This document shows, piece by piece, positions 511 through 61,121 of a stretch of DNA of 64,000 bases. The DNA is taken from the NCBI GenBank assembly GCA_946965045.2, contig OX337228.1:1-64000 (forward strand), given 5' to 3'. The position numbers were made by a program, and so were the translations under genes. This DNA is from Epithemia pelagica. Lineage: Eukaryota > Protista > Bacillariophyta. Position 1 is the first letter of the stretch. Each line of letters starts with the position of its first letter. The notes beneath the pieces are model-generated. The model saw nothing but the letters and a program-made list of their open reading frames with translations, was not told the DNA's origin and ran no database searches.

Positions 511-572
511 GTTTTCAGGTGAAGATGTTGGGCCAATTGAGGTTTTCAGGTGAAGATGTTGGGCGCGAAGGG
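511..572. repeat. 31-bp tandem duplication (GGGCCAA[A/T]TGAGGTTTTCAGGTGAAGATGTT) upstream of paralogue-2 genes; the telomere is attached inside it
   Basis: Intact form at 2037-2098; the first unit is cut at 510/511 here. Confidence 0.9.
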
Positions 573-869
573 GCACGCAGGCGAGCTTTTTGCGCCAAAG
601 AATGGGGGAACAACTAAGAGTGCGGTAATGGTTGGTAATGAGTGAAATTAAGGACTCATATTGAATATGAGTGCTTAGAAATTAGACTTGAGCGGGGCAT
701 AGACATTCTGTGCTCATCTGCACAAGGGGCAGTGCTCTTTTGCAACAAAAGGCATATATATCAGTGCTCATATGCACAGATACTATAGCCCCTTGTGCTC
801 ATATGCACACGTTCAAATCCTACGGTGTCTAGAACTAAAGACACCCAAAAAAGGCAAATATCCTTAGGG

Positions 870-1042
870 CTGTTCTAGTGGGCTGTTCTGCAGTGGGACA
901 GCAGGCTGTTCTGCAGTGGGACAGGGCACTTCTGCAGTGGGACAGAGGGCGGTTCTGCAGTGGGACAAGTGGGATGGGGGCTGTTCTGCAGTGGGACGCT
1001 AGAGTCTACGTAGGCCCACGGACAGGCACTTTCTCCTTAGGG
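870..1042 (+). repeat. End type M3 fragment: (GGGCTGTTCTGCAGTGGGACA)-like minisatellite, then TCTACGTAG, then CCTTAGGG
   Basis: Near-identical to 21276-21455 downstream of the helicase; also at 6266-6438, 11662-11834 and 17057-17229. Confidence 0.9.
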
Positions 1043-1227
1043 CACAGGTAAATTCCTGGCTCAATCGCAACGGGGGTTATGATAAATTGCAGCTCATCTG
1101 CAAAATGAGCATAACAAATTTGCTCATATGCAACAAAGCACTGTAGGATATACTGCTCATATGCACACGTTCAAATCCTACGGTCTCTAGTACTAAAACA
1201 TGCCAAAAAAAGGAAAAATACTTAGGG
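1043..1227 (+). repeat. End type M1c fragment (TGCTCATATGCA repeats, ends ACTTAGGG)
   Basis: Aligns by eye with the M1b end at 5090-5256 and the M1a end at about 2230-2407; one copy per array unit. Confidence 0.85.
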
Positions 1228-1398
1228 ATGAGGGGCTGTGCAAAGGTGGGATGAGGGGCTGTGCGAAGGTGGGATGAGGGGCTGTGCGAAGGCGGGATGA
1301 GGGCTGTGCGAAGGCGGGATGAAGGGGAATAGTAGGAGGGGAGGGTGGGAAGCCAGGATCTACATAGCTCTACGTAGAGACCTAGTTTATCCTTAGGG
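1228..1398 (+). repeat. End type M2 fragment: 22-23-bp GTGGGATGAGGGGCTGTGCGAAG minisatellite, then TCTACGTAG, then CCTTAGGG
   Basis: Near-identical to 24119-24340 and similar to 23419-23523; one copy per array unit. Confidence 0.9.
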
Positions 1399-1915
1399 TG
1401 ACCGCTCTCTTTGTTTTCAAGATTGGATCCTCTTGGGAATATTTCATACTGACAGCAGTCATAGATACCAGCCTCCCACAAGAAGTGACCTGCAATTGTT
1501 CCCTCTCAGGCCCAATGGCTCCACAGGAGTTAGGTGAGGAGAGATGACGCATAACATTGCTGAGTCTTGTCCAGCCAACAAGACACCTGCAGGAATATTC
1601 AAGAACAGACCTCCCCGTGAAGAAGTTTTTTGCAGTACGAGGGTCTTCTTGCAAAATTTGCTCAAGGGACTGTTTATTTGCAACAAGGAGTCGGTTGTCA
1701 GTTGCTGAGACACAGACTCCATGTTGATTTAGATGCCGCTGCATGGACCAAAGACTTTCACTAAATGATTTCTTGCATATGCCGCATCCCATACCAAAGG
1801 GTGTCACAATTGTAGCATCTAAACATGACAAGCCAATGCCCTGATCGGAACGGATCTTCTTCACAGGCCGTCTCCGGGATGGAGATGGCGTTCCAGGCCC
1901 ATTGTTGGTAGCCAT
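1382..1915 (-). pseudogene. 3'-truncated Zn-finger N-terminal fragment, paralogue 2a
   Basis: MATNNGPGTPSP... with CGICKK..SMQRHLNQH and CRC..RHL; homologous to the N-terminus of the 768-aa ORF; cut at the CCTTAGGG junction 1391-1398. Confidence 0.8.
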
Positions 1916-2074
1916 TGCTGGTTTCTTCGTGTGCATGGAACAGAGGAAGAGACATAACCAGCCGACTCTCAAGCAAAAGCAAGGATGGGCCTCTTTGCAA
2001 GAGTCATAATTCATGAAACAACAATGATCTTTTGTTGGGCCAAATGAGGTTTTCAGGTGAAGATGTTGGGCCAA

Positions 2075-2407
2075 TTGAGGTTTTCAGGTGAAGATGTTGG
2101 GCGCGAAGGGGCACGCAGGCGAGCTTTTTGCGCCAAAGAATGGGGGAACAACTAAGAGTGCGGTAATGGTTGGTAATGAGTGAAATTAAGGACTCATATT
2201 GAATATGAGTGCTTAGAAATTAGACTTGAGCGGGGCATAGACATTCTGTGCTCATCTGCACAAGGGGCAGTGCTCTTTTGCAACAAAAGGCATATATATC
2301 AGTGCTCATATGCACAGATACTATAGCCCCTTGTGCTCATATGCACACGTTCAAATCCTACGGTGTCTAGTACTAAAGACACCCAAAAAAGGCAAATATC
2401 CTTAGGG
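2075..2407 (+). other. 5' flank and end type M1a of the paralogue-2 cassette
   Basis: ACTCATATT-G-AATATGAGT palindrome, four GTGCTC..TGCA motifs, terminal AAATATCCTTAGGG; the same end occurs at 511-869 and in each P2a/P2b cassette. Confidence 0.85.
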
Positions 2408-4605
2408 AAGTCTTCCTTGCGTTGGTAATCAGTTGGGAAACACTTGATTTCTCGAGGGTTGGCGAGAGTCATCTTTTGTTTTCCATCTTCGTTCTTGAAA
2501 ACAGAAAACCTTACGACGTATACATTTTTAATGCCTTCGGCCCAAGAATTGTCTGGCTTTTCAAGATCTGACGGGTGGAAAACAAAAGCCGGGTACAAAA
2601 CTTCAATTGATTCTCGTTCGGCATCGTCGATATCCATGGAAACGTCCGTCTGGTAGAGTTCAATGTTTTGAGAACCGGTTGAGTGCTCAATGGGAGAATA
2701 GCTATGATTCGGGAGAGGTGGGTGACAATCGAGCTTGTTGAGAGGAAAGAGAGGAAGATAAAGAACGTAGAATGCCCAATTATTTCTCACAGGAACAAGG
2801 CAACCAAGAGATTCATGGCGAAGTTCACATAGCACTCGAAAGACCATGTATGCTCGACTCAAGGTCATGCAAAGTTTGTGCTCAATCAAATTTTTACCTT
2901 TGTGGTGAACACTGAACGCTTTTTCACTGTGTGAGTAGTAATACACACAGCCTCCATGCCACCGAACGTCAGAAAACAGGCTACGAGAAATTTCAGTGTA
3001 TCGCATGGACCCCAAACCTGTTCCATGAAATGCCAATTCCAAATAGGAGGCAAGGACATCAATGTCGCAGAGATCATAGTCGTCCTGAAGAACAATATCC
3101 TCTTGGGAGTAATTATTGTGACCCGATGCCAAAGTCATTGTTGTCTTGCCCATAGAACTCCAACACACAAACAGTGGATATCGTCGATTCAGTAGATTCA
3201 CCCAACGATTACCCTTGATCACCTTGCAAAGTGAAGCAACCAACTTGTCAAAGATGATCGGAATGACGTTCGACCATTTCTGAAACTTGAACATAAAACC
3301 ATCAACAAGTATATCGTAGTTGTCTTGAATGGACACTTTCCGTGAAGACGGTGTGAGCGACTCTCTCCACCGCATACGCCGAATCGTACTTGCCAAAAAA
3401 TTGACTGTGATGGAGTTTTGAACATTTTCCACCAGCCGAGAAGCTTTCTCATGGTAGCCCCGTCCCATGAAGTATATCATTGAGCAAATACTGGCCCGAA
3501 GCATGGCCAAAATGGCTGACAGCATTGTCGCAATGTAGGAGGGACTCCAAACAGAAAGTGTCTCTGAACCTTCTTGCCCCCGGACAACTCTCCCCGCGCA
3601 GTAGGTCATGACTGTGGTATGATGCTGAACAGAATCCACTGTTTCTAAACACAGCTTTGCCAGTAAAGAGGGAATATCTCTAGTGAGTGGCAGAAGTTTG
3701 TGGTTGCTTTGACACAGGAACGAGAGCAATTTCTTGAACTCGGGGAGAAGTCTTTTGGGGTACGCAGTGAAGGTGAAAGTAGAAATCGCATTGGGACTTC
3801 TTGCTCCATCAAAGACCAACAGCCTTGATCGGTAATTTGCTGGAACCATCTGGACATGGAGGGCAGCCTGTGCTGTGAGCCAGTTTTCTCCTTGATGGTA
3901 CAACAAATCAAAGAGTGGTTGATTGTCGATGATGTGTTTCAAGTTGATGGAGTCATATAAGAAATGCACTCGTTCCTTGAATGACCTTCCCTTGGGCCTG
4001 GATGGGTAAGGTTCGTCTTGGGCCAAGGGATGGAAAAGGGGTACGAAACACCCCATCATATCGGGGAGTACATGAAGAGTTGCTTGTAGTTGTGTGCTTG
4101 TTTTGAGTGAAGGGGCTTCTTGACAGGAATACTTGATCTGTAATGCCTTGAGGGAAATCATACGGCCACAGGTACTGATTTGTAGCTCCTCTTCTGTAGG
4201 GGAGGGAGCACCGCAGGTACGACCCGAGGACAAATGTCTGTACACATTTTGAAGTTTCAAGCTCCCAACAAGACAATGACATGAATAGCCCTTGACCTTT
4301 TCCCCCGTCATATATTCAGAGACACTTGAAATGTCTTGCATAACACTTTGAAGGAGGGTCATTTGATGTTCTATCAGTGACTGGCTTTCAGAACGTGAGA
4401 CAGACACACCATGGCCATTAAGGTGCCTTTGCATGGACCATAGACTGGTTCCAAACGGTTTCCCACATAGGCGACACCCCATACCAAAGGGGGTCACTAG
4501 CGTGACATCGACAGCCTGTAGTTTGTTCTCTTCCTTTTTTTTCTTCGTTGGTCTCCTCCTTGATGGAGAAGGAGTCCCTGGCCCATTATTAGAGGGGGAA
4601 GCCAT
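2299..4605 (-). CDS. 768-aa chimeric ORF: Zn-finger plus tyrosine-recombinase-like N-terminal part of a TLH-type protein (paralogue 1), fused in frame to a G2 fragment
   Basis: CRLCGKP..SMQRHLNGH and CHC..RHL; LELAFHGTGLGSMRYTEI...VYYYSHSEK. Bases 2408-2767 match the G2 ORF at 18595-18954; the last ~36 codons read through the M1a end. Confidence 0.7.
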   Translation of the reverse strand: MASPSNNGPGTPSPSRRRPTKKKKEENKLQAVDVTLVTPFGMGCRLCGKPFGTSLWSMQRHLNGHGVSVSRSESQSLIEHQMTLLQSVMQDISSVSEYMTGEKVKGYSCHCLVGSLKLQNVYRHLSSGRTCGAPSPTEEELQISTCGRMISLKALQIKYSCQEAPSLKTSTQLQATLHVLPDMMGCFVPLFHPLAQDEPYPSRPKGRSFKERVHFLYDSINLKHIIDNQPLFDLLYHQGENWLTAQAALHVQMVPANYRSRLLVFDGARSPNAISTFTFTAYPKRLLPEFKKLLSFLCQSNHKLLPLTRDIPSLLAKLCLETVDSVQHHTTVMTYCAGRVVRGQEGSETLSVWSPSYIATMLSAILAMLRASICSMIYFMGRGYHEKASRLVENVQNSITVNFLASTIRRMRWRESLTPSSRKVSIQDNYDILVDGFMFKFQKWSNVIPIIFDKLVASLCKVIKGNRWVNLLNRRYPLFVCWSSMGKTTMTLASGHNNYSQEDIVLQDDYDLCDIDVLASYLELAFHGTGLGSMRYTEISRSLFSDVRWHGGCVYYYSHSEKAFSVHHKGKNLIEHKLCMTLSRAYMVFRVLCELRHESLGCLVPVRNNWAFYVLYLPLFPLNKLDCHPPLPNHSYSPIEHSTGSQNIELYQTDVSMDIDDAERESIEVLYPAFVFHPSDLEKPDNSWAEGIKNVYVVRFSVFKNEDGKQKMTLANPREIKCFPTDYQRKEDFPKDICLFWVSLVLDTVGFERVHMSTRGYSICAYEH

Positions 4606-5089
4606 TGTCGATAGAGGTTTTGCTGAGAGTGTTCAAGAGACATCTTTCATCGTTCATCAAAGAAAGGGAGTGATGACCCTTTGCAGAATTGCATTGGGCC
4701 CAATTTACTGAACGAATGATGGGTAGGTACAAAGACCTAGAGGCATAAACTAGAAATGGTCAAAATGGGATTTTGATGAGAACTAGTGATGGGTGGAATG
4801 AGATTTTTCTGTGAAATGCCAGCGTCATTTGGCGGGAAAAAAGATTGTACAAAAAAGTTAGTTGGTCATTTGTGTACAAATATATGTCACTCGTACACAC
4901 ATATTAGCTGGTTTGTTGTAACAAGGAAATTTTGTACAGCAAACCAAAGGAAATTCAATCTTACGTTGATTCTTGTATGTAGAGTAGGGCAAGACAAAAA
5001 CCTAACTGGCAGAGCTCTGAAAAGTATTTGGCCAGTATAGAGCATATTGAATATGACGGCTTTTCGGGAGTGGTCAAAGGGGCATAGAC

Positions 5090-5256
5090 AAGGCCACTGC
5101 TCAATCGCAACAAAAGCATAACAAATTGCAGCTCATCCGCAACAAATCCTTGCTCATATGCAACAGGCACTATAGGATTTTGTGCTCATATGCACACGTT
5201 CAAATTCTACGGTCTCTAGTACTAAAAGCTCCCAAAAAAGTGAAATATCCTTAGGG
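5090..5256 (+). other. End type M1b, upstream of the paralogue-1 gene
   Basis: TGCTCATATGCA repeats, CAAATTCTACGGTCTCTAGTACTAAAA, terminal AAATATCCTTAGGG; last 67 bp identical to 19450-19516. Confidence 0.85.
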
Positions 5257-5773
5257 TGACCGCTCTCTTTGTTTTCAAGATTGGATCCTCTTGGGAATAT
5301 TTCATACTGACAGCAGTCATAGATACCAGCCTCCCACAAGAAGTGACCTGTAATTGTTCCCTCTCAGGCCCAATGGCTCCACAGGAGTTAGGTGAGGAGA
5401 GATGACGCATAACATTGCTGAGTCTTGTCCAACCAACAAGACACCTGCAGGAATATCCAAGAACAGACCTCCCCGTGAAGAAGCTTTTTGCGGTATGAGG
5501 GTTTTCTTGCAAAATTTGCTCAAGGGACTGTTTATTTGCAACAAGGAGTCGGTTGTCAGTTGCTGAGACACAGACTCCATGTTGATTTAGATGCCGCTGC
5601 ATGGACCAAAGACTTTCACCAAATGATTTCTTGCATATGCCACATCCCATACCAAAGGGTGTCACAATTGTAGCATCTAAACATGACAAGCCAATGCCCT
5701 GATCGGAACGGATCTTCTTCACAGGCCGTCTCCGGGATGGAGATGGCGTTCCAGGCCCATTGTTGGTAGCCAT
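5222..5773 (-). pseudogene. 3'-truncated Zn-finger fragment, paralogue 2b
   Basis: A few percent diverged from 2a (e.g. QENPHTAKSF vs QEDPRTAKNF); cut at the same internal site, junction 5249-5256. Confidence 0.8.
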
Positions 5774-6777
5774 TGCTGGTTTCCTCGTGTGCATGGAACA
5801 GAGGAAGAGACATAACCAGCCGACTCTCAAGCAAAAGCAAGGATGGGCCTCTTTGCAAGAGTCATAATTCATGAAACAACAATGATCTTTTGTTGGGCCA
5901 AATGAGGTTTTCAGGTGAAGATGTTGGGCCAATTGAGGTTTTCAGGTGAAGATGTTGGGCGCGAAGGGGCACGCAGGCGAGCTTTTTGCGCCAAAGAATG
6001 GGGGAACAACTAAGAGTGCGGTAATGGTTGGTAATGAGTGAAATTAAGGACTCATATTGAATATGAGTGCTTAGAAATTAGACTTGAGCGGGGCATAGAC
6101 ATTCTGTGCTCATCTGCACAAGGGGCAGTGCTCTTTTGCAACAAAAGGCATATATATCAGTGCTCATATGCACAGATACTATAGCCCCTTGTGCTCATAT
6201 GCACACGTTCAAATCCTACGGTGTCTAGAACTAAAGACACCCAAAAAAGGCAAATATCCTTAGGGCTGTTCTAGTGGGCTGTTCTGCAGTGGGACAGCAG
6301 GCTGTTCTGCAGTGGGACAGGGCACTTCTGCAGTGGGACAGAGGGCGGTTCTGCAGTGGGACAAGTGGGATGGGGGCTGTTCTGCAGTGGGACGCTAGAG
6401 TCTACGTAGGCCCACGGACAGGCACTTTCTCCTTAGGGCACAGGTAAATTCCTGGCTCAATCGCAACGGGGGTTATGATAAATTGCAGCTCATCTGCAAA
6501 ATGAGCATAACAAATTTGCTCATATGCAACAAAGCACTGTAGGATATACTGCTCATATGCACACGTTCAAATCCTACGGTCTCTAGTACTAAAACATGCC
6601 AAAAAAAGGAAAAATACTTAGGGATGAGGGGCTGTGCAAAGGTGGGATGAGGGGCTGTGCGAAGGTGGGATGAGGGGCTGTGCGAAGGCGGGATGAGGGC
6701 TGTGCGAAGGCGGGATGAAGGGGAATAGTAGGAGGGGAGGGTGGGAAGCCAGGATCTACATAGCTCTACGTAGAGAC

Positions 6778-7311
6778 CTAGTTTATCCTTAGGGTGACCG
6801 CTCTCTTTGTTTTCAAGATTGGATCCTCTTGGGAATATTTCATACTGACAGCAGTCATAGATACCAGCCTCCCACAAGAAGTGACCTGCAATTGTTCCCT
6901 CTCAGGCCCAATGGCTCCACAGGAGTTAGGTGAGGAGAGATGACGCATAACATTGCTGAGTCTTGTCCAGCCAACAAGACACCTGCAGGAATATTCAAGA
7001 ACAGACCTCCCCGTGAAGAAGTTTTTTGCGGTACGAGGGTCTTCTTGCAAAATTTGCTCAAGGGACTGTTTATTTGCAACAAGGAGTCGGTTGTCAGTTG
7101 CTGAGACACAGACTCCATGTTGATTTAGATGCCGCTGCATGGACCAAAGACTTTCACTAAATGATTTCTTGCATATGCCGCATCCCATACCAAAGGGTGT
7201 CACAATTGTAGCATCTAAACATGACAAGCCAATGCCCTGATCGGAACGGATCTTCTTCACAGGCCGTCTCCGGGATGGAGATGGCGTTCCAGGCCCATTG
7301 TTGGTAGCCAT
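6778..7311 (-). pseudogene. Paralogue 2a fragment, copy 2
   Basis: Array copy of 1382-1915. Confidence 0.8.
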
Positions 7312-7694
7312 TGCTGGTTTCTTCGTGTGCATGGAACAGAGGAAGAGACATAACCATCCGACTCTCAAGCAAAAGCAAGGATGGGCCTCTTTGCAAGAGT
7401 CATAATTCATGAAACAACAATGATCTTTTGTTGGGCCAAATGAGGTTTTCAGGTGAAGATGTTGGGCCAATTGAGGTTTTCAGGTGAAGATGTTGGGCGC
7501 GAAGGGGCACGCAGGCGAGCTTTTTGCGCCAAAGAATGGGGGAACAACTAAGAGTGCGGTAATGGTTGGTAATGAGTGAAATTAAGGACTCATATTGAAT
7601 ATGAGTGCTTAGAAATTAGACTTGAGCGGGGCATAGACATTCTGTGCTCATCTGCACAAGGGGCAGTGCTCTTTTGCAACAAAAGGCATATATA

Positions 7695-10001
7695 TCAGTG
7701 CTCATATGCACAGATACTATAGCCCCTTGTGCTCATATGCACACGTTCAAATCCTACGGTGTCTAGTACTAAAGACACCCAAAAAAGGCAAATATCCTTA
7801 GGGAAGTCTTCCTTGCGTTGGTAATCAGTTGGGAAACACTTGATTTCTCGAGGGTTGGCGAGAGTCATCTTTTGTTTTCCATCTTCGTTCTTGAAAACAG
7901 AAAACCGTACGACGTATACATTTTTAATGCCTTCGGCCCAAGAATTGTCTGGCTTTTCAAGATCTGACGGGTGGAAAACAAAAGCCGGGTACAAAACTTC
8001 AATTGATTCTCGTTCGGCATCGTCGATATCCATGGAAACGTCCGTCTGGTAGAGTTCAATGTTTTGAGAACCGGTTGAGTGCTCAATGGGAGAATAGCTA
8101 TGATTCGGGAGAGGTGGGTGACAATCGAGCTTGTTGAGAGGAAAGAGAGGAAGATAAAGAACGTAGAATGCCCAATTATTTCTCACAGGAACAAGGCAAC
8201 CAAGAGATTCATGGCGAAGTTCACATAGCACTCGAAAGACCATGTATGCTCGACTCAAGGTCATGCAAAGTTTGTGCTCAATCAAATTTTTACCTTTGTG
8301 GTGAACACTGAACGCTTTTTCACTGTGTGAGTAGTAATACACACAGCCTCCATGCCACCGAACGTCAGAAAACAGGCTACGAGAAATTTCAGTGTATCGC
8401 ATGGACCCCAAACCTGTTCCATGAAATGCCAATTCCAAATAGGAGGCAAGGACATCAATGTCGCAGAGATCATAGTCGTCCTGAAGAACAATATCCTCTT
8501 GGGAGTAATTATTGTGACCCGATGCCAAAGTCATTGTTGTCTTGCCCATAGAACTCCAACACACAAACAGTGGATATCGTCGATTCAGTAGATTCACCCA
8601 ACGATTACCCTTGATCACCTTGCAAAGTGAAGCAACCAACTTGTCAAAGATGATCGGAATGACGTTCGACCATTTCTGAAACTTGAACATAAAACCATCA
8701 ACAAGTATATCGTAGTTGTCTTGAATGGACACTTTCCGTGAAGACGGTGTGAGCGACTCTCTCCACCGCATACGCCGAATCGTACTTGCCAAAAAATTGA
8801 CTGTGATGGAGTTTTGAACATTTTCCACCAGCCGAGAAGCTTTCTCATGGTAGCCCCGTCCCATGAAGTATATCATTGAGCAAATACTGGCCCGAAGCAT
8901 GGCCAAAATGGCTGACAGCATCGTCGCAATGTAGGAGGGACTCCAAACAGAAAGTGTCTCTGAACCTTCTTGCCCCCGGACAACTCTCCCCGCGCAGTAG
9001 GTCATGACTGTGGTATGATGCTGAACAGAATCCACTGTTTCTAAACACAGCTTTGCCAGTAAAGAGGGAATATCTCTAGTGAGTGGCAGAAGTTTGTGGT
9101 TGCTTTGACACAGGAACGAGAGCAATTTCTTGAACTCGGGGAGAAGTCTTTTGGGGTACGCAGTGAAGGTGAAAGTAGAAATCGCATTGGGACTTCTTGC
9201 TCCATCAAAGACCAACAGCCTTGATCGGTAATTTGCTGGAACCATCTGGACATGGAGGGCAGCCTGTGCTGTGAGCCAGTTTTCTCCTTGATGGTACAAC
9301 AAATCAAAGAGTGGTTGATTGTCGATGATGTGTTTCAAGTTGATGGAGTCATATAAGAAATGCACTCGTTCCTTGAATGACCTTCCCTTGGGCCTGGATG
9401 GGTAAGGTTCGTCTTGGGCCAAGGGATGGAAAAGGGGTACGAAACACCCCATCATATCGGGGAGTACATGAAGAGTTGCTTGTAGTTGTGTGCTTGTTTT
9501 GAGTGAAGGGGCTTCTTGACAGGAATACTTGATCTGTAATGCCTTGAGGGAAATCATACGGCCACAGGTACTGATTTGTAGCTCCTCTTCTGTAGGGGAG
9601 GGAGCACCGCAGGTACGACCCGAGGACAAATGTCTGTACACATTTTGAAGTTTCAAGCTCCCAACAAGACAATGACATGAATAGCCCTTGACCTTTTCCC
9701 CCGTCATATATTCAGAGACACTTGAAATGTCTTGCATAACACTTTGAAGGAGGGTCATTTGATGTTCTATCAGTGACTGGCTTTCAGAACGTGAGACAGA
9801 CACACCATGGCCATTAAGGTGCCTTTGCATGGACCATAGACTGGTTCCAAACGGTTTCCCACATAGGCGACACCCCATACCAAAGGGGGTCACTAGCGTG
9901 ACATCGACAGCCTGTAGTTTGTTCTCTTCCTTTTTTTTCTTCGTTGGTCTCCTCCTTGATGGAGAAGGAGTCCCTGGCCCATTATTAGAGGGGGAAGCCA
10001 T
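7695..10001 (-). CDS. 768-aa chimeric ORF, copy 2
   Basis: Translation identical to 2299-4605. Confidence 0.7.
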   Translation of the reverse strand: MASPSNNGPGTPSPSRRRPTKKKKEENKLQAVDVTLVTPFGMGCRLCGKPFGTSLWSMQRHLNGHGVSVSRSESQSLIEHQMTLLQSVMQDISSVSEYMTGEKVKGYSCHCLVGSLKLQNVYRHLSSGRTCGAPSPTEEELQISTCGRMISLKALQIKYSCQEAPSLKTSTQLQATLHVLPDMMGCFVPLFHPLAQDEPYPSRPKGRSFKERVHFLYDSINLKHIIDNQPLFDLLYHQGENWLTAQAALHVQMVPANYRSRLLVFDGARSPNAISTFTFTAYPKRLLPEFKKLLSFLCQSNHKLLPLTRDIPSLLAKLCLETVDSVQHHTTVMTYCAGRVVRGQEGSETLSVWSPSYIATMLSAILAMLRASICSMIYFMGRGYHEKASRLVENVQNSITVNFLASTIRRMRWRESLTPSSRKVSIQDNYDILVDGFMFKFQKWSNVIPIIFDKLVASLCKVIKGNRWVNLLNRRYPLFVCWSSMGKTTMTLASGHNNYSQEDIVLQDDYDLCDIDVLASYLELAFHGTGLGSMRYTEISRSLFSDVRWHGGCVYYYSHSEKAFSVHHKGKNLIEHKLCMTLSRAYMVFRVLCELRHESLGCLVPVRNNWAFYVLYLPLFPLNKLDCHPPLPNHSYSPIEHSTGSQNIELYQTDVSMDIDDAERESIEVLYPAFVFHPSDLEKPDNSWAEGIKNVYVVRFSVFKNEDGKQKMTLANPREIKCFPTDYQRKEDFPKDICLFWVSLVLDTVGFERVHMSTRGYSICAYEH

Positions 10002-16564: not shown

Positions 16565-17568
16565 TGCTGGTTTCCTCGTGTGCATGGAACAGAGGAAGAG
16601 ACATAACCAGCCGACTCTCAAGCAAAAGCAAGGATGGGCCTCTTTGCAAGAGTCATAATTCATGAAACAACAATGATCTTTTGTTGGGCCAAATGAGGTT
16701 TTCAGGTGAAGATGTTGGGCCAATTGAGGTTTTCAGGTGAAGATGTTGGGCGCGAAGGGGCACGCAGGCGAGCTTTTTGCGCCAAAGAATGGGGGAACAA
16801 CTAAGAGTGCGGTAATGGTTGGTAATGAGTGAAATTAAGGACTCATATTGAATATGAGTGCTTAGAAATTAGACTTGAGCGGGGCATAGACATTCTGTGC
16901 TCATCTGCACAAGGGGCAGTGCTCTTTTGCAACAAAAGGCATATATATCAGTGCTCATATGCACAGATACTATAGCCCCTTGTGCTCATATGCACACGTT
17001 CAAATCCTACGGTGTCTAGAACTAAAGACACCCAAAAAAGGCAAATATCCTTAGGGCTGTTCTAGTGGGCTGTTCTGCAGTGGGACAGCAGGCTGTTCTG
17101 CAGTGGGACAGGGCACTTCTGCAGTGGGACAGAGGGCGGTTCTGCAGTGGGACAAGTGGGATGGGGGCTGTTCTGCAGTGGGACGCTAGAGTCTACGTAG
17201 GCCCACGGACAGGCACTTTCTCCTTAGGGCACAGGTAAATTCCTGGCTCAATCGCAACGGGGGTTATGATAAATTGCAGCTCATCTGCAAAATGAGCATA
17301 ACAAATTTGCTCATATGCAACAAAGCACTGTAGGATATACTGCTCATATGCACACGTTCAAATCCTACGGTCTCTAGTACTAAAACATGCCAAAAAAAGG
17401 AAAAATACTTAGGGATGAGGGGCTGTGCAAAGGTGGGATGAGGGGCTGTGCGAAGGTGGGATGAGGGGCTGTGCGAAGGCGGGATGAGGGCTGTGCGAAG
17501 GCGGGATGAAGGGGAATAGTAGGAGGGGAGGGTGGGAAGCCAGGATCTACATAGCTCTACGTAGAGAC

Positions 17569-18102
17569 CTAGTTTATCCTTAGGGTGACCGCTCTCTTTG
17601 TTTTCAAGATTGGATCCTCTTGGGAATATTTCATACTGACAGCAGTCATAGATACCAGCCTCCCACAAGAAGTGACCTGCAATTGTTCCCTCTCAGGCCC
17701 AATGGCTCCACAGGAGTTAGGTGAGGAGAGATGACGCATAACATTGCTGAGTCTTGTCCAGCCAACAAGACACCTGCAGGAATATTCAAGAACAGACCTC
17801 CCCGTGAAGAAGTTTTTTGCGGTACGAGGGTCTTCTTGCAAAATTTGCTCAAGGGACTGTTTATTTGCAACAAGGAGTCGGTTGTCAGTTGCTGAGACAC
17901 AGACTCCATGTTGATTTAGATGCCGCTGCATGGACCAAAGACTTTCACTAAATGATTTCTTGCATATGCCGCATCCCATACCAAAGGGTGTCACAATTGT
18001 AGCATCTAAACATGACAAGCCAATGCCCTGATCGGAACGGATCTTCTTCACAGGCCGTCTCCGGGATGGAGATGGCGTTCCAGGCCCATTGTTGGTAGCC
18101 AT
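17569..18102 (-). pseudogene. Paralogue 2a fragment, copy 4
   Basis: Array copy of 1382-1915. Confidence 0.8.
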
Positions 18103-18485
18103 TGCTGGTTTCTTCGTGTGCATGGAACAGAGGAAGAGACATAACCAGCCGACTCTCAAGCAAAAGCAAGGATGGGCCTCTTTGCAAGAGTCATAATTCA
18201 TGAAACAACAATGATCTTTTGTTGGGCCAAATGAGGTTTTCAGGTGAAGATGTTGGGCCAATTGAGGTTTTCAGGTGAAGATGTTGGGCGCGAAGGGGCA
18301 CGCAGGCGAGCTTTTTGCGCCAAAGAATGGGGGAACAACTAAGAGTGCGGTAATGGTTGGTAATGAGTGAAATTAAGGACTCATATTGAATATGAGTGCT
18401 TAGAAATTAGACTTGAGCGGGGCATAGACATTCTGTGCTCATCTGCACAAGGGGCAGTGCTCTTTTGCAACAAAAGGCATATATA

Positions 18486-19154
18486 TCAGTGCTCATATGC
18501 ACAGATACTATAGCCCCTTGTGCTCATATGCACACGTTCAAATCCTACGGTGTCTAGTACTAAAGACACCCAAAAAAGGCAAATATCCTTAGGGAAGTCT
18601 TCCTTGCGTTGGTAATCAGTTGGGAAACACTTGATTTCTCGAGGGTTGGCGAGAGTCATCTTTTGTTTTCCATCTTCGTTCTTGAAAACAGAAAACCGTA
18701 CGACGTATACATTTTTAATGCCTTCGGCCCAAGAATTGTCTGGCTTTTCAAGATCTGACGGGTGGAAAACAAAAGCCGGGTACAAAACTTCAATTGATTC
18801 TCGTTCGGCATCGTCGATATCCATGGAAACGTCCGTCTGGTAGAGTTCAATGTTTTGAGAACCGGTTGAGTGCTCAATGGGAGAATAGCTATGATTCGGG
18901 AGAGGTGGGTGACAATCGAGCTTCTTGAGAGGAAAGAGAGGAAGATAAAGAACGATGGATTGCTTGCTTCCTTGTCGGTGAATCAACCTGCCGATGGTCG
19001 TCGTACCATCGTCTTGATTGGGAATTCGGGCATGGACAAAAGTTCCGAGACGAAAGTAATCGTCAAGTTGCTCGACGTAGATGGCGCCACGGGCAGAAGT
19101 CATGATGGTGTCGGAAATCAATTCGGGAGATGAATGTGGGGTTTGTTGGGACAA
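18486..19154 (-). pseudogene. G2: 3'-truncated gene of unknown function, possibly BAH-like
   Basis: Open from ATG 19154 and cut at CCTTAGGG 18587-18594; YFRLGTFVHAR..TIGRLI and ELYQTD..PAFVFHP pattern. Confidence 0.55.
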
Positions 19155-19516
19155 CAGAACGACTAGAGATTATTGGAACGATCAAGGGCGTCCATTGTTA
19201 TCAAGAATCGGTCCGATTGGCATTAGGAGTTGCCTCCGAGTTGGTCAGTACCGGTGGAGAAAAAATGAGGGAAAACGACAATTCTGCGTCAAAATGCTTT
19301 AAGTAAGATATGTCGTGGATTTTTTCTAATTATTGGTATTTTCCGTTGAAAATAGCGCGCGAGTACGGTTTTGTAAGCGCGGGCCGTGATTTTTGGTCTT
19401 AGGGGGAGCGTGAATGTGAGCAAAATTGGTATGGAAAGGCTCCTAATGTATGCACACGTTCAAATTCTACGGTCTCTAGTACTAAAAGCTCCCAAAAAAG
19501 TGAAATATCCTTAGGG

Positions 19517-21052
19517 AGGAAATTTTCCAGATGTGATGTTCTGTACGGTGGACTCGATCGGGAGTCTTTTCAAATTTCACTGTCTCTTTGTGCATGAACT
19601 GTCATCAAAACACAAAATTGCCCGATTTTATCTCGATGAAGTGCATACACTATTCAGTGAACAGTTCAGAATGGCATATGACAACATACGGAACATCGGG
19701 CAATTTGGGGTGCCCCTCACCGCACTCTCTGGAACTCTTCCCGGGCCTCTGGTAGAAAGTCTTTATGAATACTTGGGTCTTCGTCTCGATCGATTGATTA
19801 CGGGGAGAACTCTATTGGGAAACTTCCCTAAGGGTTTCCAAATTGAGACAGTCCAATCATCACAACTAGTCCATGACACAGTGATCTGCACCAAAGGCAA
19901 AGTAACCACAGAGTCATCAACCTGTGTACATGTGATTGTGGCAACTAAACAGCAGTGTACCGACATTGCACAGTGCCTCAAGCAATCAACCAACCTTTCT
20001 GTTGACAAGCAATCAACCAACCTTTCTGTTGAAGCTCTGTCATCGGATGAGCCTTCAAGTAGACAAGAAGCAGTTGCCCAGCAGTGGAGATCTGGGGACA
20101 TCCGAATCTTGGTCTCAACAAAATGTGCACTATGTGGTAATGAGAATCACAATTGTCGACATGTGATTGTATGCGGCATGATATACAGTCTAATGAACAT
20201 CGTCCAAGCTGTGGGACGCCTACGGCCAAGTCAGAGAAAGCCTGATGGGAGTGTCACATTGTTGTATAGCACAGGACACATGGCAAGGGATCTCCAAGAA
20301 GACCAGACATTGAGGCTACTTGAAGACAAAGGATTACTGACTGGATCTGAATCAAGAGCTCACCTTGAGTTGGTGTTTGGCTCAAGTTCAATAGCAAAGT
20401 GGCTGGCCGAAAGATCATGCCGAGTACAAGGTCTGTCAAGACAATTCGGATTGGAGGTGGATTGCTGTGGTGTGTGTGATTGGTGTGTTGAACAATCAAA
20501 TCAAAGTGGACACTCCAGAGTCAGGGAGAGGGTCAGGAATGAAGACATTGATGCGGAAAGGCTGAATCCTATCTGGCAAGGCTTACAAGAGAATGCATTG
20601 TGTGCAAGGAGGCAGGATGCAATGGTGAAAGCTGTCTGCCCTATGGAGCATGCTTCAACTGTGGTCAGCCAGGTCACCAGAGAGGACAGTGCCGAGTCAA
20701 TTTCCAAACAGTCTTGAGCAACAAGGCCTGCTTTTACTGCTTTGATGTGTTCAGCAGGCGCGGCTACAAGCAACACCATCCCAGTACATGTCCTTTACAA
20801 CGAAGATTGAAGCGGCTGATGATCGATGTATATGAGTCAAGGAAGACCAATGGACAATCCAGAGCAATGACTGATTTCATGTCCAAAGTAACATGCGACA
20901 GCCATTCGTTTCATGCTTTTCTGTGTCAGAGTGTTGAACAACGGATGGGCATGACAGTGACACAGACACCTCATGCAACCACAGCAGCCAGACCATCTGT
21001 GGCACGACCAGCTCTACCAAGGAATCCATATGCAAAGAAAGCATTCAAGTAG
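19517..21052 (+). pseudogene. 5'-truncated RecQ-like (SF2) telomere-linked-type helicase with Zn-binding region and CCHC knuckle
   Basis: LDEVH (motif II), ALSGT (III), ILVST..G (V), QAVGRLR (VI), CR..CCGVCDWC, CFNCGQPGHQRGQC. Walker A is missing (cut at junction 19509-19516). One-base frameshift near 20557; 27-bp in-frame duplication (KQSTNLSV x2). Confidence 0.88.
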
Positions 21053-21275
21053 ATAGTATTAAGTTAGTAGTTACAATGTGTCGGGGTAAAGACCATCATC
21101 AAAAGGCCCATAGAAGAGTCATCTCACAAAAAATCTAATCACGTCCCACAAAAAATATTAGGCCCAAAGAATGGTCATTTCACACAAAAATCTGACCCAG
21201 TCACACTTGTAGTGACGGGAAATGAAACTAGTCGAGCTACGACTAACTAATAAGCATGGGCATAGGTATGACTAG

Positions 21276-21455
21276 AATAGGGCTGTTCTAGTGGGCTGTT
21301 CTGCAGTGGGACAGCAGGCTGTTCTGCAGTGGGACAGGGCACTTCTGCAGTGGGACAGAGGGCGATTCTGCAGTGGGACAAGTGGGATGGGGGCTGTTCT
21401 GCAGTGGGACGCTAGAGTCTACGTAGGCCTACGGACAGGCACTTTCTCCTTAGGG
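21276..21455 (+). other. End type M3 in longer context, 3' of the helicase gene
   Basis: Follows the helicase 3' flank; G-rich minisatellite, TCTACGTAG, terminal CTCCTTAGGG. Confidence 0.85.
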
Positions 21456-23418
21456 TTTCTCACCAAGCAAGGCAGATCCTGACATTTGGATGAGAAAAGC
21501 ACCTGGGGAGGATTGCTACGAATACATCGCCGTATATGTGGATGACTTAGCCATCATAGCTACTGACCCTGGAAACATTTGCAAAGGCTTCAAGGAAAAG
21601 TACAACTTCAAGCTTAAGGGAGATGGACCTATTGACTATCACCTGGGATGCCGGTACATCAAGGACCCTGACGGAACCCTAGTCTCTGATCCACGCCGAT
21701 ACATTAGCAAAATGATGGACACCTTCGAACGTATCTTCAAAGAGAAACCCAAGAAGGCTAAGACCCCTCTCATTGCTTGTGATCACCCGGAATTGGACGA
21801 CACCGAACTCCTTGATGAAGAAGGTACACAGCACTTCCAGACCTTGATTGGACAGCTTCAGTGGGTGATTACAATTGGTCGCTTTGATGTTTTTACTGCT
21901 ACGATGACCCTTTCCAGGTTCCGCGCAGCTCCAAGACAGGGACATCTCAACAGAGCTAAACGCATCTATGGATACCTTTTCAATCTTTCTGATGGTGCAA
22001 TCAGATTCCAAATCGGAGAGCCCGATTTCTCAAGCATTCCAAGTCAAGACTTTGATTGGAGTCGTACGGTCTATTCAGATGCCAAGGAATACATCCCTCA
22101 TGATTGCCCAGAACCACTTGGACGATATGTGACGACAACGCACTATGTTGATGCTAACCTTATGCACGACATGATCACAGGAAAGTCTGTAACAAACATC
22201 TCTCGAATGGGACACCAATTGATTGGTACAGCAAACGACAGAGCACTGTGGAAACGGCAACATATGGATCAGAATTTGTGGCAGCAAGGACAGCAGTCGA
22301 CCAAATCACTGAATTACGGCATTCACTTCGTTACCTTGGAGTACCAATCAGGAATCGCAGTTATCTGTTTGGAGACAATCGATCTGTGGTTGTTAACGCA
22401 ACAATGCCTCATTCTATCTTGTCCAAGAGACATCATCTCCTTTCATATCACCGGGTACGAGAAGCAATAGCAGTGCAATACGTTGCATTCTATTGGAAGG
22501 ATGGGAAGACCAACCCTGCCGACATCCTCAGCAAGCATTGGGAGTTTGCAACTATTTGGCCTCTACTCAAGCCCCAATTGTTTTGGAGAGGAGAAGTTCA
22601 AGATCTCTACGAATCCAGCGATGACAAGGCTGAACCAACGAGCTGTGGGGAGTAGTAGAACTCTCACCAAAAATCATCGGTTAGGTTCGGCACGTCATCG
22701 GTTAGTCGAGTCCCGTGGCTTCAAACATCACCTTCATCACCTACATCCACACTACATACCTAGCTTCGCGCTAGCTCAACATATATTTCGGTCGCATATA
22801 CCAAAAAGTGAGAACAGATTGACAAACGTGCTATCAAGAATCAACTTTGGTCTTGATATCCCATCAACGGACGATCATCCGTTGAACATCCGAGCCTGAC
22901 CTATGCCCTAAGCGTGCGCGCCCAAATTCGTTAAGACGCGCGCAAGAACTATCCGAGCGTGGCGACCATGTATCCGACCCAACGGTCTAAGTACACAAGG
23001 CACGAATCACGATCACGCGAGACCATATCATCGTTCCCACTATTTCAAGATTACAAACAAGGACGCGCCAACAAAACTACATATACCAACTTTAGCCAAG
23101 AATCGTTGAGGATGTATATGATATACAAGCACATATACATGTTATATACCTCACATACATCAACTCCAACCATTCCAGTCCTATCACCGCCAAGAACCTA
23201 TTTCACACGATTGACAACAAGAATGGAAACCTCACACACCAAACCTAGTAGTAAGCTCACAATCATTAACATTACCATATCATCACGTCTTCAGTGTCCT
23301 GACTATCCCTACGATAGAGCCCTTGGGTTTCCTTTGTTCTCTGACCCGTGGAGAACCTTGGTATCAGTTGGTAATCGATTGTGGCTCTTCTAGAGCGTGT
23401 ACTGACGGAATTCTACTA
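21456..23418 (+). mobile_element. 5'-truncated Ty1/copia (CoDi-like) LTR retrotransposon: RT C-terminal part, RNase H, PPT and 3' LTR
   Basis: ADPDIWMRK..YIAVYVDDL, YVDANLMHD, ETATYGSEFVAAR, NPADILSKHW; frameshift near 22195; PPT GGGGAG at 22647-22652. Confidence 0.93.
22653..23418 (+). repeat. Putative copia 3' LTR, 766 bp, ends TAGTAGAA...TTCTACTA
   Basis: Starts immediately after the PPT; 8-bp terminal inverted repeat; M2 minisatellite resumes right after 23418. Confidence 0.75.
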
Positions 23419-23523
23419 GGATGAGGGCTGTGCGAAGGTGGGATGACGGGGCATAGTAGGAGGGGAGGGTGGGAAGCCAGGATCTACAGAGCTCTACGTA
23501 GCAAACCTAGTTTATCCTTAGGG

Positions 23524-23954
23524 GTATCACTTGTTTCCACTCCAGGGATCAACCTGCAACAGACTGTTGTCACACAAGAAGTTCTTGTTGCACTTGAACC
23601 ATTGCACACTCCTCCACTATGGCGACAGTGATCTGCAAGTGCTCTTTGTGTCTTGAAAATTTCTCCACAAACGCAGCAATGACCCATCACAGTCTCCAGG
23701 ATACTTGATGACCTGGTTTCTGTAGTGTTTAATTGTTGCATGTGGCTCTTACACTGTGCCAACATGTCTTTTAAGGAAACCCTGGTCACCCACTGCCGGT
23801 GTTTCTTCAAATGCCTTTGCAAGGACGATGTTGAAAAACCAATTGGAACTTTACAAACCAAACAAAAAATACCAAAATGAGACACCCTGATGCCATGGTG
23901 ATTGTCAAAGGCATACCCGGTCAATGGGTCAAACAACGGGGAAGAATCTGACAT
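23524..23954 (-). pseudogene. 3'-truncated Zn-finger fragment, divergent paralogue 3
   Basis: FGIFCLVCKVPIGFSTSSLQRHLKKH and CCVCGEIF..ADHCRH are co-linear with paralogues 1 and 2; cut at junction 23516-23523. Confidence 0.75.
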
Positions 23955-24118
23955 GGTCAATGGAGGAACTGTGCAAGGTACCAATGACAGCGAGACGAGA
24001 GATAGATAGATGGGGTGGAGTGAGGTCATTTGGCCCATACAAATTCATATGGGCCAAATGACCTTGGCAGTCCAAGGGAAAAGGCAACAATAATTACTAT
24101 AGGTTTTGATTGTACCTT

Positions 24119-24340
24119 GTGGGATGAGGGGCTGTGCGAAGGTGGGATGAGGGGCTGTGCAAAGGTGGGATGAGGGGCTGTGCGAAGGTGGGATGAGGGG
24201 CTGTGCGAAGGTGGGATGAGGGGCTGTGCGAAGGCGGGATGAGGGCTGTGCGAAGGCGGGATGAAGGGGAATAGTAGGAGGGGAGGGTGGGAAGCCAGGA
24301 TCTACATAGCTCCACGTAGAGACCTAGTTTATCCTTAGGG
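24119..24340 (+). repeat. End type M2 in longer context: about 6-7 units of a 23-bp G-rich minisatellite, then terminal TATCCTTAGGG
   Basis: Units start at 24119, 24142, 24165, 24188, 24211 and 24234; lies upstream of the paralogue-3 start. Confidence 0.9.
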
Positions 24341-61110: not shown

Positions 61111-61121
61111 CTCGGCCAACG

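Follow-up and report, generated by a model that had tools for sequence, protein, structure and literature searches.

How does a diatom chromosome end come to carry, directly beneath its telomere, a series of partial genes for zinc-finger and helicase proteins, all shortened on the same side? We analysed the first 64,000 nucleotides of contig OX337228.1 of Epithemia pelagica (GCA_946965045.2; hereafter the window), and we think it rather probable that this chromosome end grew as members of a DNA element family were attached to it again and again, each by one end. A preliminary description had proposed a candidate mobile element spanning 511-24340. A motif end does lie at 24340, whereas 511 is the point where the telomere meets a truncated unit and is not an element end.

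Exact matches to CCTTAGGG numbered 24 in the window, against 1.10 expected (sd 1.0; none of 100 shuffles reached 24), and 23 of them were on the + strand. The sole match on the - strand, at 19826, falls within the helicase ORF. The motif closes the 5' flanks of zinc-finger ORFs on the - strand (e.g., 2400-2407, 5249-5256 and 24333-24340); for the helicase/CCHC gene, which lies on the + strand, it closes the 3' flank (21448-21455). The inverted 8-mer thereby bounds the gene on its 5' side (end types T1, T1v and T3) and on its 3' side (type T2), as the preliminary description had noticed. In the window, the 50 nt to the left of the motif are conserved and fall into three end types, and to the right the sequence changes from join to join. 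Nine independent joins were counted (24340, 23523, 21455, 19516, 18594, 17585, 17229, 17056 and 16047); the remaining occurrences are copies within a 5,396-bp tandem array and were left out of this count. In all nine, the conserved element side is distal and the variable side proximal; the element ends all face the centromere and every piece is shortened on the telomere side. At three further contig ends in this assembly (L001, L003 and L004), 17 of 17 exact CCCTAAGG motifs showed the identical polarity, all pointing toward the contig end or telomere. Elements were joined by the 5' end or, less often, by the 3' end. Joins via the 3' terminus made up about a fifth, and type T2 pieces with the antisense 3' part of the helicase gene occurred at 21455, 17229, L003:11925, L004:7167 and L004:12259. 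The word depth of the T2 terminus was roughly 60-80 times that of the Y fragment described below.

The terminal telomere, (CCCTAA)85 on the + strand with one irregular unit near 300-311, occupies positions 1-510. At 510/511 its repeats abut the 2049-equivalent position of a truncated unit with an overlap of 0-1 nt, which indicates de novo telomere addition; telomerase healing at a non-terminal site was also found at position 19866. Directly under the telomere lies the tandem array (511-18954, - strand), with 3.42 units of 5,396 bp that are more than 99.8% identical and contain five joins each. At the unit boundary, about 1 nt of microhomology links position 2490 of element D to the final 360 nt of the Y fragment, and the array is a secondary, later amplification of part of the stack. 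The proximal copy of element D (13559-16047, - strand) consists of a type T1v 5' end, with CCCTAAGG at 16047-16040 on the - strand, and 2,489 nt of paralogue 1, and is 99.4% identical to L001:9350-11839. It is followed by element C' (16048-17056, - strand), a type T1 5' end with 1,009 nt of the zinc-finger ORF paralogue G2 at a CCCA cut site; by element A (17057-17229, + strand), 173 nt from the 3' terminus (type T2) of a helicase element, joined 3'-end first at a CCCTA cut site; by element B (17230-17585, - strand), 356 nt of a type T3 5' end with subterminal 23-nt tandem repeats and a CCCT cut site; and by element C (17586-18594, - strand), again a type T1 5' end with 1,009 nt of G2 and a CCCA cut site identical to that of C'. 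Recombination between copies could replace two independent joins in the case of C and C'.

Adjoining element C, the Y fragment (18595-19448, - strand) comes from outside the element family: it derives from a host gene family, of which an intact relative, P0007, sits at an internal locus. The fragment meets, without a motif, a type T1v 5' end reduced to 68 nt (19449-19516, - strand), for which the parent of the target reads TGGG. The next piece (19517-21455, + strand) is the 3' part of a helicase element, joined 3'-end first, which codes for the second RecA lobe, the Zn-binding region and CCHC knuckles; its 3' UTR contains 23-nt repeats, and its type T2 end occupies 21448-21455. In this copy one nucleotide is missing after 20556 and 27 nt are duplicated at 19979. 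A high-copy copia-type retrotransposon fragment (RVT_2 to its 3' end; 21456-23418, + strand), marked by its depth and by loose ends at 21453 and 23418/23419, had inserted into the T3 element; a later cut at a TGGG within the fragment received the T2 end. A 105-nt type T3 5' end (23419-23523, - strand) separates it from the oldest element of the stack, 817 nt of another type T3 5' end (23524-24340, - strand), whose zinc-finger ORF (23484-24038) reads across the next join. Unique chromosome sequence extends from 24341 onward. As had been stated before, there is no complete copy in the window. All its copies are truncated and unable to encode an active enzyme. Any activity would have to be supplied by intact copies at other places in the genome.

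The representative 768-aa ORF of element D, paralogue 1 (2299-4605, - strand) encodes two C2H2 fingers and the core-binding domain of the recombinase, followed by half of the catalytic domain, the first, with Arg I and Lys. It agrees up to residue 613 with P0002, a 1,264-aa ORF at another contig end of the same assembly that is 99% identical to the window ORF (BLASTP); beyond that residue it carries foreign sequence, and it lacks R634, H668, Y677 and the entire helicase. P0002 continues into DEAD, Helicase_C and CCHC knuckles, and the zinc-finger ORF and the helicase are thus parts of one gene, a link that the preliminary description had proposed. The same architecture was found in all six long members scanned (among 201 cluster representatives), and in other genomic copies an extra base after 20556 joins the helicase and knuckle ORFs into one. 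An AlphaFold2 model of the putative recombinase (mean pLDDT 83) had Cre and XerH as its best PDB matches (Foldseek probability 0.98; VIA-align Z 9.3, both domains), with type IB topoisomerases, Flp and TelK next. Across 18 family members, R535, K562, R634 and H668 were invariant and Y677 nearly so, and the classical recombinase His II was not conserved. The motif GHSxxTHxxxY has the H-x8-Y spacing of XerD. By predicted fold and motifs, the middle part is probably a tyrosine recombinase, in agreement with its earlier labelling as recombinase-like. The helicase, earlier labelled RecQ, is RecQ-like by profile: its family profile matched RECQL5 at 9e-19, then BLM, RecQ, RECQ1 and WRN. For the N-terminal 700 aa, the best Swiss-Prot fold matches were Y'-Help1 (E 4e-6, probability 1.0) and S. 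pombe Tlh2, and the Atlas feature neighbours were Ascomycota proteins with OrsD, some also with DEAD.

For 16 joins a parent sequence could be recovered, and in 15 of them it has, at the join, CCC with A or T as the next base. Parents within the fetched loci have CCC at the join in 12 of 13 cases, with 3-5 nt shared, and for three more joins in the window, with parents from other genomic contigs, all three read TGGG. The base adjoining the triplet is A or T in 15 of 15 CCC-reading parents. The rule is not absolute, because one parent reads CCT and two joins read GCCTAAGG and ACCTAAGG. An overlap of 3-5 nt is what microhomology-mediated end joining by the host would equally give.

Loci of relatives behave alike. 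L010 reads ...GCTAT-CCC-TAAGGATAAA and three other contigs read ...GCTAT-CCC-ACGAATTG; one join is polymorphic among metagenome contigs of a relative. In L020, L022 and L024 the conserved sequence starts at CC(C)TAAG with different sequence upstream in each, and in L044 the motif cuts the helicase gene. Element starts keep the motif in relatives whose proteins are about 30% identical. Given an exact element side, a changing partner, a CCCW target and one join that is polymorphic in a relative, the ends behave as mobile-unit termini and not as passive duplications. With P0002 at hand and the L010 join polymorphic, the contrary case considered in the preliminary description, in which no locus links the zinc-finger and recombinase-like ORF to the helicase and the ends are passive and without insertion polymorphism, does not hold. 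An intact CCCTAAGG...CCTTAGGG copy was found neither at four chromosome ends nor in 42 loci of relatives. In the E. pelagica genome, neither an element end running into (TTAGGG)n nor a linear or circular extrachromosomal form was seen, and no head-to-head, circle, hairpin or palindromic junction was present in the window-aligned contigs or any locus, contigs being prone to drop rare forms. Of the earlier reading, then, the single gene, the recombinase, the RecQ-like helicase and the mobile termini stand, whereas the intact unit, the telomere-capped end and the extrachromosomal form were not seen; a linear telomere-seeded element is for these reasons something that we infer.

The full element would be about 5 kb long with one ORF of about 1,350 aa, encoding in order two C2H2 fingers, a tyrosine recombinase (core-binding and catalytic domains), a RecQ-like helicase with a Zn-binding region, and CCHC knuckles. 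Its layout would be a 5' CCCTAAGG, family-specific subterminal sequence, the ORF, a 3' UTR containing short tandem repeats, and ...CCTTAGGG as the 3' terminus. The two termini would then make up an inverted repeat of 8 bp, one telomere unit with two further bases. The 5' end (T1v, paralogue 1) and 3' end (T2) analysed here belong to subfamilies with helicases only 30% identical. In the joins, one precise terminus is attached to a site in the outermost sequence, namely CCC then A or T on the strand running endward, and the sequence distal to the site is lost. The new element points outward and is shortened in its turn by the next join, breakage or erosion, which produces a polar stack. On this reading, the window records at least nine joins, interrupted once by a copia insertion and once by the capture of ordinary gene DNA, afterwards the tandem amplification of a 5.4-kb piece of the stack, and finally the healing of the end by telomerase within a truncated element. 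The join may be the work of the element's own putative recombinase, which would cut at the terminus, stay covalently bound to the ...TTAGGG 3' end and pass this end on to chromosomal DNA via the 3-nt GGG/CCC overlap, while the helicase would unwind the chromosome end; the outer terminus ...TTAGGG-3' could seed a new telomere.

The join might instead be made by the host, with a real mobile element present as a free linear copy (...TTAGGG-3' on both strands). Such a copy would be taken up where a chromosome end is uncapped and resected, through microhomology-mediated end joining or break-induced replication at GGG/CCC, and the recombinase would only release or resolve it. The short and variable overlaps (2-5 nt), the use of either terminus, the capture of the non-element Y fragment without a motif and telomerase healing at non-terminal sites all fit this route. 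However, microhomology alone needs no A or T after CCC, yet all 15 CCC parents have one; it does not demand the untrimmed terminus found in nearly all joins, and no free form was seen. We regard this route as rather unlikely. Exchange of chromosome ends without any free element, by a crossover between a CCCTAAGG boundary and CCCW through the recombinase or homologous repair, would carry the element together with all distal DNA, telomere included. A single site at the proximal boundary would suffice, Cryptons are reported to mediate rearrangements between the element terminus and distant target sites (PMC9977147), and tandem and segmental duplications are frequent at ends. We nevertheless consider such exchange improbable, as joins by the 3' terminus (an inverted element, about one in five) would yield dicentric and acentric products and the four ends examined share no run of consecutive joins.

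Passive subtelomeric mosaicism, in which duplicated segments are shuffled by ectopic recombination or by the fusion of ends whose telomeres are very short, and the motif is an interstitial telomere relic, would account for a single telomere unit inverted against the true telomere, as in end-to-end fusion. The head-to-head (TTAGGG)n-TTAA-CCCTAAC palindrome at L005 in another species and the 5.4-kb array as a passive duplication are also in its favour. It is very improbable, however, given exactly one unit every time, whose flanking bases are fixed and which has 40-70 nt of family-specific sequence conserved on just one of its sides, a set of at least 25 partners with strict polarity at four ends, the CCCW rule, a polymorphic junction in a relative and a motif kept at element starts in such divergent relatives. 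Telomere-specific retrotransposons of the HeT-A/TART or terminal Penelope-like kind, attached by target-primed reverse transcription, are an extremely improbable source, even though the polar, head-to-tail arrangement, the exact end toward the centromere, the variable truncation of the distal end and the telomere-like motif at the junction resemble theirs. Reverse transcriptase was absent from every family member scanned, the 5' end of the gene faces the centromere in most joins, opposite to target-primed reverse transcription, and the lone reverse-transcriptase sequence in the window, the copia fragment, is unrelated and itself a join target.

Among known systems, Drosophila HeT-A/TART/TAHRE and the terminal Penelope-like elements Athena and Coprina form polar head-to-tail arrays at chromosome ends, in which the end toward the centromere is precise and the distal end is truncated to a varying extent. 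The diatom stack shares this form; however, those are retroelements that use reverse transcription and have the 3' end toward the centromere, whereas the diatom elements have no reverse transcriptase and usually the 5' end there. Crypton DNA transposons also encode a tyrosine recombinase, and it alone, and are reported to mediate the terminus-to-target rearrangements mentioned above (PMC9977147); the diatom terminus starts CCCTA and its target is CCCW. Cryptons insert whole and internally and excise, but the diatom elements were seen only one-ended at chromosome ends, and they differ in the fused RecQ-like helicase, the C2H2 fingers, the CCHC knuckles and termini formed by an 8-bp inverted repeat that is a telomere unit. 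The recombinase model shares its catalytic fold with type IB topoisomerases (Z 6.4-7.8), TelK (Z 4.6) and TelA (Z 3.8), although its best matches are Cre/Xer-type recombinases and not resolvases. In protelomerases or telomere resolvases (TelK, TelA, ResT) and type IB topoisomerases, a 3'-phosphotyrosyl intermediate is resolved by a 5'-OH, and by analogy such chemistry would permit joining of the element 3' end to a DNA end. Two termini head to head would make the 16-bp palindrome CCTTAGGGCCCTAAGG, and no such junction was observed.

There is also a likeness to the telomere-linked helicase elements of fungi (S. cerevisiae Y'/Y'-Help1, S. pombe tlh1/tlh2, Magnaporthe TLH1 and Ustilago UTASa), which are also multi-copy and telomere-adjacent. 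Common to both are a single long ORF, a diverged RecQ-like helicase behind a long N-terminal extension, short tandem repeats and frequent truncation at chromosome ends; the likeness of the diatom N-terminal 700 aa to Y'-Help1 and Tlh2 is one of predicted fold. Y' units are separated by telomere tracts oriented like the telomere, whereas the diatom stacks have one inverted unit at CCCW sites and truncated units of several subfamilies. In the searchable literature, the fungal elements are subtelomeric repeats or genes and not recombinase-encoding mobile elements, and we found there no pairing of a telomere-linked helicase with a tyrosine recombinase. One study reported none outside fungi, and in Magnaporthe the TLH region has its proximal boundary at a repeat unit starting with the inverted telomere-like CCTAACC (PMC1635262). 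A stack joined via a fixed inverted telomere unit may explain how telomere-linked helicase elements of the yeast Y' type spread.

The sequence opens with 85 units of CCCTAA (1-510) and is thus a chromosome end in which coordinates increase from the tip toward the interior. This telomere array was perfect except for one irregular unit at 300-311, where the spacing was 11 instead of 12 and a TTAGGT variant occurred. Behind it lay 3.42 tandem units of 5,396 bp (511-18954; mutual identity >99.8%), followed by unique pieces that reached to 24340 and included a helicase fragment, a copia reverse-transcriptase fragment and a further zinc-finger ORF. Ordinary sequence began at 24341. The telomere-like 8-mer CCTTAGGG occurred 24 times in the window, compared with 1.1 copies expected, and 23 of these were on the + strand; the sole copy on the - strand sat within the helicase ORF. 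Three conserved types, T1 (and its variant T1v), T2 and T3, were distinguished by the 50 bases to the left of the motif, and the bases to its right varied from join to join. Read on the - strand, 5' to 3' toward the tip, every piece opened with the inverse motif CCCTAAGG and a conserved leader, and stopped where the next piece opened. Once the tandem copies were removed, nine independent joins between an element terminus and older proximal sequence remained, at 24340, 23523, 21455, 19516, 18594, 17585, 17229, 17056 and 16047.

Because T1, T1v and T3 were followed by a zinc-finger ORF in the sense direction, they are 5' termini of different subfamilies; two further 5' types, T4 and T5, were present on other contig ends. 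Behind T2, and behind one variant of it, lay the 3' part of the helicase gene in antisense orientation, which makes T2 a 3' terminus. Both ends of the unit thus carry the 8-mer, in inverted orientation, which agrees with the preliminary description, and no inverted repeat longer than the 8-mer was found between element ends. Either end was used for joining, the 3' terminus in about one join in five. At the ends of three other contigs of the assembly (L001, L003 and L004), all 17 exact CCCTAAGG motifs had the same polarity, with each element starting on the centromere side and the stack building toward the contig end. The stacks on these three ends and in the window, which itself opens with a telomere, all pointed outward. 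At three starts on those other contig ends the motif was shortened or altered (GCCTAAGG, ACCTAAGG and the older, diverged CCCCTAAGT). Among 25 unique joins on the four ends, the interrupted sequence never resumed beyond the incoming element, and no run of consecutive joins was common to different ends. Subterminal 23-nt tandem repeats, with 4 to 6.6 copies and a common GGGCTGT core, were observed in T2 and T3 termini at 880-967, 1225-1327, 21293-21380 and 24119-24269; they may be protein-binding sites and are comparable to the helicase-associated repeats of Magnaporthe.

The sequence that an element had joined could be compared with a longer, uninterrupted copy, or parent, for 13 joins from the loci examined and for three more joins of the window from contigs of public runs of the organism. 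In 12 of the first 13 joins the parent read CCC exactly at the start of the incoming CCCTAAGG, with 3-5 bases common to both; the remaining parent read CCT. The + strand read TGGG in each of the three parents from the public runs (copia at 21453, helicase at 19514 and a T3 element at 23521). The base beside the triplet was A or T in all 15 parents with CCC, so that CCC + A/T (CCCW) held for 15 of the 16 parents overall. As a random site would start with CCC only about 1-2% of the time, this represents a strong site preference. A precise terminus, a variable partner and the CCCW target are the behavior of a mobile unit, as had been suggested earlier.

The repeat unit carries a 768-aa ORF (2299-4605, - strand) that had no Pfam match. 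In the ORFs of the window Pfam recognized Helicase_C, together with a weak CCHC and an RVT_2 below threshold (22.8 bits compared with a cut-off of 31.6), and nothing else, so that the zinc-finger ORFs were without matches; NCBIfam returned far sub-threshold matches only. The nature of the gene was revealed by P0002, a protein of 1,264 aa whose gene lies at a contig end elsewhere in the assembly. It was 99% identical to the ORF of the window by BLASTP, or 94.7% by a position-by-position count over the first 640 residues, and it ran on into DEAD, Helicase_C and CCHC knuckles. The window copy tracked P0002 to residue 613 and then passed into foreign DNA. The gene for P0002 is contiguous from the zinc-finger N-terminus to the helicase, a link that the preliminary description had proposed to look for. 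An exhaustive HMMER search yielded 201 cluster representatives, many of them 1,300-1,850 aa long, and the domain order was identical in all six long members scanned. The domain evidence indicates a protein composed of zinc fingers, a tyrosine recombinase, a RecQ-like helicase and zinc knuckles. P0002 together with the fold and profile evidence agrees with the domain content first described, and the earlier reading of the unit's coding content and of its mobile behavior with the 8-mer at both ends was largely right.

The recombinase could be detected solely by its fold and by its motifs; a profile of the first 700 residues searched against PDB sequences found two C2H2 fingers only. The best PDB matches of an AlphaFold2 model (mean pLDDT 83) were Cre and XerH, with a Foldseek probability of 0.98 for Cre. 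VIA-align superposed model residues 245-649 on residues 24-307 of Cre (Z 9.3), which gave a two-domain Cre/Xer-like fold. Type IB topoisomerases, Flp and protelomerases followed Cre and Xer in this ranking, and ranks 1-30, 32 and 34 were all recombinases, type IB topoisomerases or protelomerases. In an alignment of 18 members, R535, K562, R634 and H668 were invariant and Y677 nearly so. They lay in the conserved motifs GxGGGSxRxxEL (R535), SxK (K562), QVRxFWTS (R634) and SGHSxxTHxxxY (H668 and Y677), and the H-x8-Y spacing between H668 and Y677 is that of XerD. His II of the catalytic set was not conserved among the 18 members. On the basis of the model and these residues, the tyrosine recombinase is apparently intact in full-length relatives.

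The helicase domains DEAD and Helicase_C were found by Pfam, and their RecQ affinity became visible by profile. Single-sequence searches of PDB sequences gave generic SF2 matches only, and a profile of the C-terminal halves matched RECQL5 (9e-19), with an alignment that spanned the two lobes and the Zn-binding region, followed by BLM, RecQ, RECQ1 and WRN. The helicase fragment of the window (19517-21455, + strand) comes from the 3' part of a gene whose subfamily shares only 30% identity with P0002. Its helicase and knuckle ORFs were in different frames; other genomic copies had one extra base after 20556, which makes helicase and knuckles one ORF. A 27-nt duplication at 19979 of the window copy was also absent from the other genomic copies. 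Judging from their sequences, the copies in the window are all unable to encode a functional recombinase or helicase.

A single copy bearing both termini around the full gene, as envisaged in the preliminary description, was absent from the window, the three other ends and 42 loci of relatives. The longest copy (L001:9350-13789) ended about 85 codons short of the expected stop because the next element began there. Neither a terminus followed by (TTAGGG)n, which had also been proposed as a check, nor a free linear or circular form was seen in the Logan contigs of three runs, which drop rare forms, or at any locus of the genome that was examined. A head-to-head junction of two element termini would read CCTTAGGGCCCTAAGG, and no strand-switching joint was present among the loose ends listed for these contigs.

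Relatives in other organisms provided further joins. Four metagenome contigs encoded one identical family member of 1,356 aa; one of them, L010, read ...GCTAT-CCC-TAAGGATAAA and the other three ...GCTAT-CCC-ACGAATTG. As far as the contig sequences tell, this difference is a present/absent join that obeys the CCC rule. In three related freshwater contigs the common sequence started at CC(C)TAAG and the sequence upstream differed in each, and in another contig the helicase gene was cut by the motif. The motif was present six times in the 42 loci of relatives, always on the sense strand of the gene. Metagenome contigs of 5-7 kb were inspected as possible complete elements. L002 was rejected because its ends lay inside the tandem repeats that flanked its single ORF (1-1000 and 5400-6156; about 120 nt at the 5' side and about 190 nt at the 3' side), and L007-L011 because the telomere motif was absent from their ends except for the join in L010. 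In L005, from another species, the family gene was internal in a 99.5-kb contig and its 3' flank carried about 50 bp of degenerate TTAGGG repeats; with this telomere tract present and the 5' boundary unrecognizable, it was also rejected as a complete element. [quoted passage not shown]

Not all of the stack consists of element DNA. The copia-type fragment (21456-23418) belongs to a family of very high copy number, with a word depth of up to 36,000-91,000 compared with about 100-250 for low-copy neighbors, and its 3' end at 23418 abuts a 105-nt stump of a T3 element. The Y fragment (18595-19448) is a piece of an unannotated host gene family that was joined into the stack without the motif. This family had no Pfam match and many homologs of 300-600 aa. 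We rejected its ORF as a second element gene because an intact relative, P0007, 77% identical to the Y fragment, is encoded internally on another contig, where its gene is flanked by Snf7 and HSF genes. The 5,396-bp array is secondary: at its boundary, position 2490 of element D, the piece with the T1v end that carries the 768-aa ORF, was fused to the last 360 nt of the Y fragment with an overlap of about 1 nt, a non-homologous junction. In L004 a chimeric unit had been duplicated in tandem in a similar way (941 bp), and secondary amplification therefore seems common at these ends. The telomere was attached inside a truncated piece with an overlap of 0-1 base, which indicates that telomerase healed a broken end there. 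In one contig of run X3, (CCCTAA)n was joined directly at 19866, inside the helicase sequence, so that telomerase has also healed a different chromosome end, or the end in a different cell lineage, inside an element of this kind. Two further features were observed, an imperfect 458-bp palindrome just inside the stack (24924-25381) and an inverted duplication of about 1.9 kb (25795-27703 and 61121-62817; 93% identical) with arms about 34 kb apart.

The order of the pieces gives the history of this chromosome end. A T3 element first joined unique DNA at 24340 and a second T3 element came after it at 23523, into which copia inserted 105 nt from the terminus. The end then receded into copia, and a helicase element was added by its 3' terminus at TGGG (21455). 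After loss back into the helicase, a T1v element was added at 19516 and was cut to 68 nt before the piece of the ordinary host gene family was attached. T1, T3, T2, T1 and T1v elements came next, from 18594 to 16047, and a 5.4-kb stretch of the stack then underwent tandem amplification. The youngest event was a break inside a T1 element with healing by telomerase.

The joins had a precise terminus, a variable partner, a strict polarity and a CCCW target, and used either terminus; we infer that the recombinase makes them. In tyrosine recombinases and type IB topoisomerases the enzyme stays attached to the 3' end of the cleaved strand, and a 5'-OH completes the reaction. While strands are swapped, classical recombinases also check roughly three bases for homology. 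This chemistry and the three-base test fit a ...TTAGGG 3' end joined at GGG. We tentatively suggest, with more doubt than confidence, that autonomous DNA elements re-cap chromosome ends: the ...TTAGGG 3' end, held covalently by the recombinase, would be ligated to an uncapped end at GGG, the free outer terminus would seed a telomere, and the fungal Y'/TLH elements would go back to one ancient eukaryotic element shared with the diatom family. If true, this would be a mode of one-ended transposition of which we know no description for any element, and the origin and spread of the fungal Y'/TLH elements would be explained.

The same joins could result if the host captured a free linear copy by microhomology-mediated end joining, and we rate this second to joining by the recombinase. 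We consider end exchange between chromosomes less probable, since dicentric products would arise from joins by the 3' terminus. Retrotransposition fails on several counts, since a reverse-transcriptase domain was absent from every family member scanned and the 5' end faced the centromere in most joins, and so does passive mosaicism.

Telomere-linked helicase genes, such as yeast Y', fission-yeast tlh and Magnaporthe TLH, have been known for decades. We know of no accepted account of why they occupy chromosome ends or how they spread. A putative non-fungal relative with an apparently intact recombinase domain in its N-terminal extension, precise termini that each consist of one inverted telomere unit and a CCCW rule turn a 'subtelomeric repeat' into a testable mobile-element mechanism, for which the recombinase domain, the catalytic tyrosine and the 8-bp terminus offer handles to biochemistry and genetics. 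The findings suggest a DNA-based repair of uncapped chromosome ends, parallel to telomerase and to the retrotransposon solution of Drosophila.

The closest fold matches in Swiss-Prot to the N-terminal 700 residues were Y'-Help1 of S. cerevisiae (E 4e-6) and Tlh2 of S. pombe; bacterial Xer proteins ranked below these two, whose TM scores were low because the model is multi-domain. Feature neighbors in the ESM Atlas were Ascomycota proteins with OrsD, some of them also with DEAD. Like the diatom element, TLH and Y'-type elements carry a RecQ-like superfamily 2 helicase, are telomere-adjacent and occur on several chromosome ends. The literature that we found, with incomplete coverage of subscription journals, held no report that pairs TLH or Y' elements with a tyrosine recombinase. 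In Magnaporthe the TLH gene is flanked by tandem repeats and is frequently truncated, and no TLH genes were found outside fungi (Rehmeyer et al. 2006, PMC1635262). Its proximal boundary lies at a repeat unit that starts with the inverted telomere-like CCTAACC (PMC1635262), which parallels the diatom joins. The diatom element differs from HeT-A/TART and from terminal Penelope-like elements in that reverse transcriptase was absent from the family members scanned and in that the 5' end mostly lies toward the centromere. Cryptons insert whole and internally, whereas the diatom joins never show the target continuing beyond the element. Nevertheless, they are the nearest mechanistic precedent: in the Crypton model, which is backed by Crypton activity in Chlamydomonas, a short donor motif at one terminus recombines with a near-identical target (PMC9977147), and the diatom terminus starts with CCCTA and its target is CCC + A/T.
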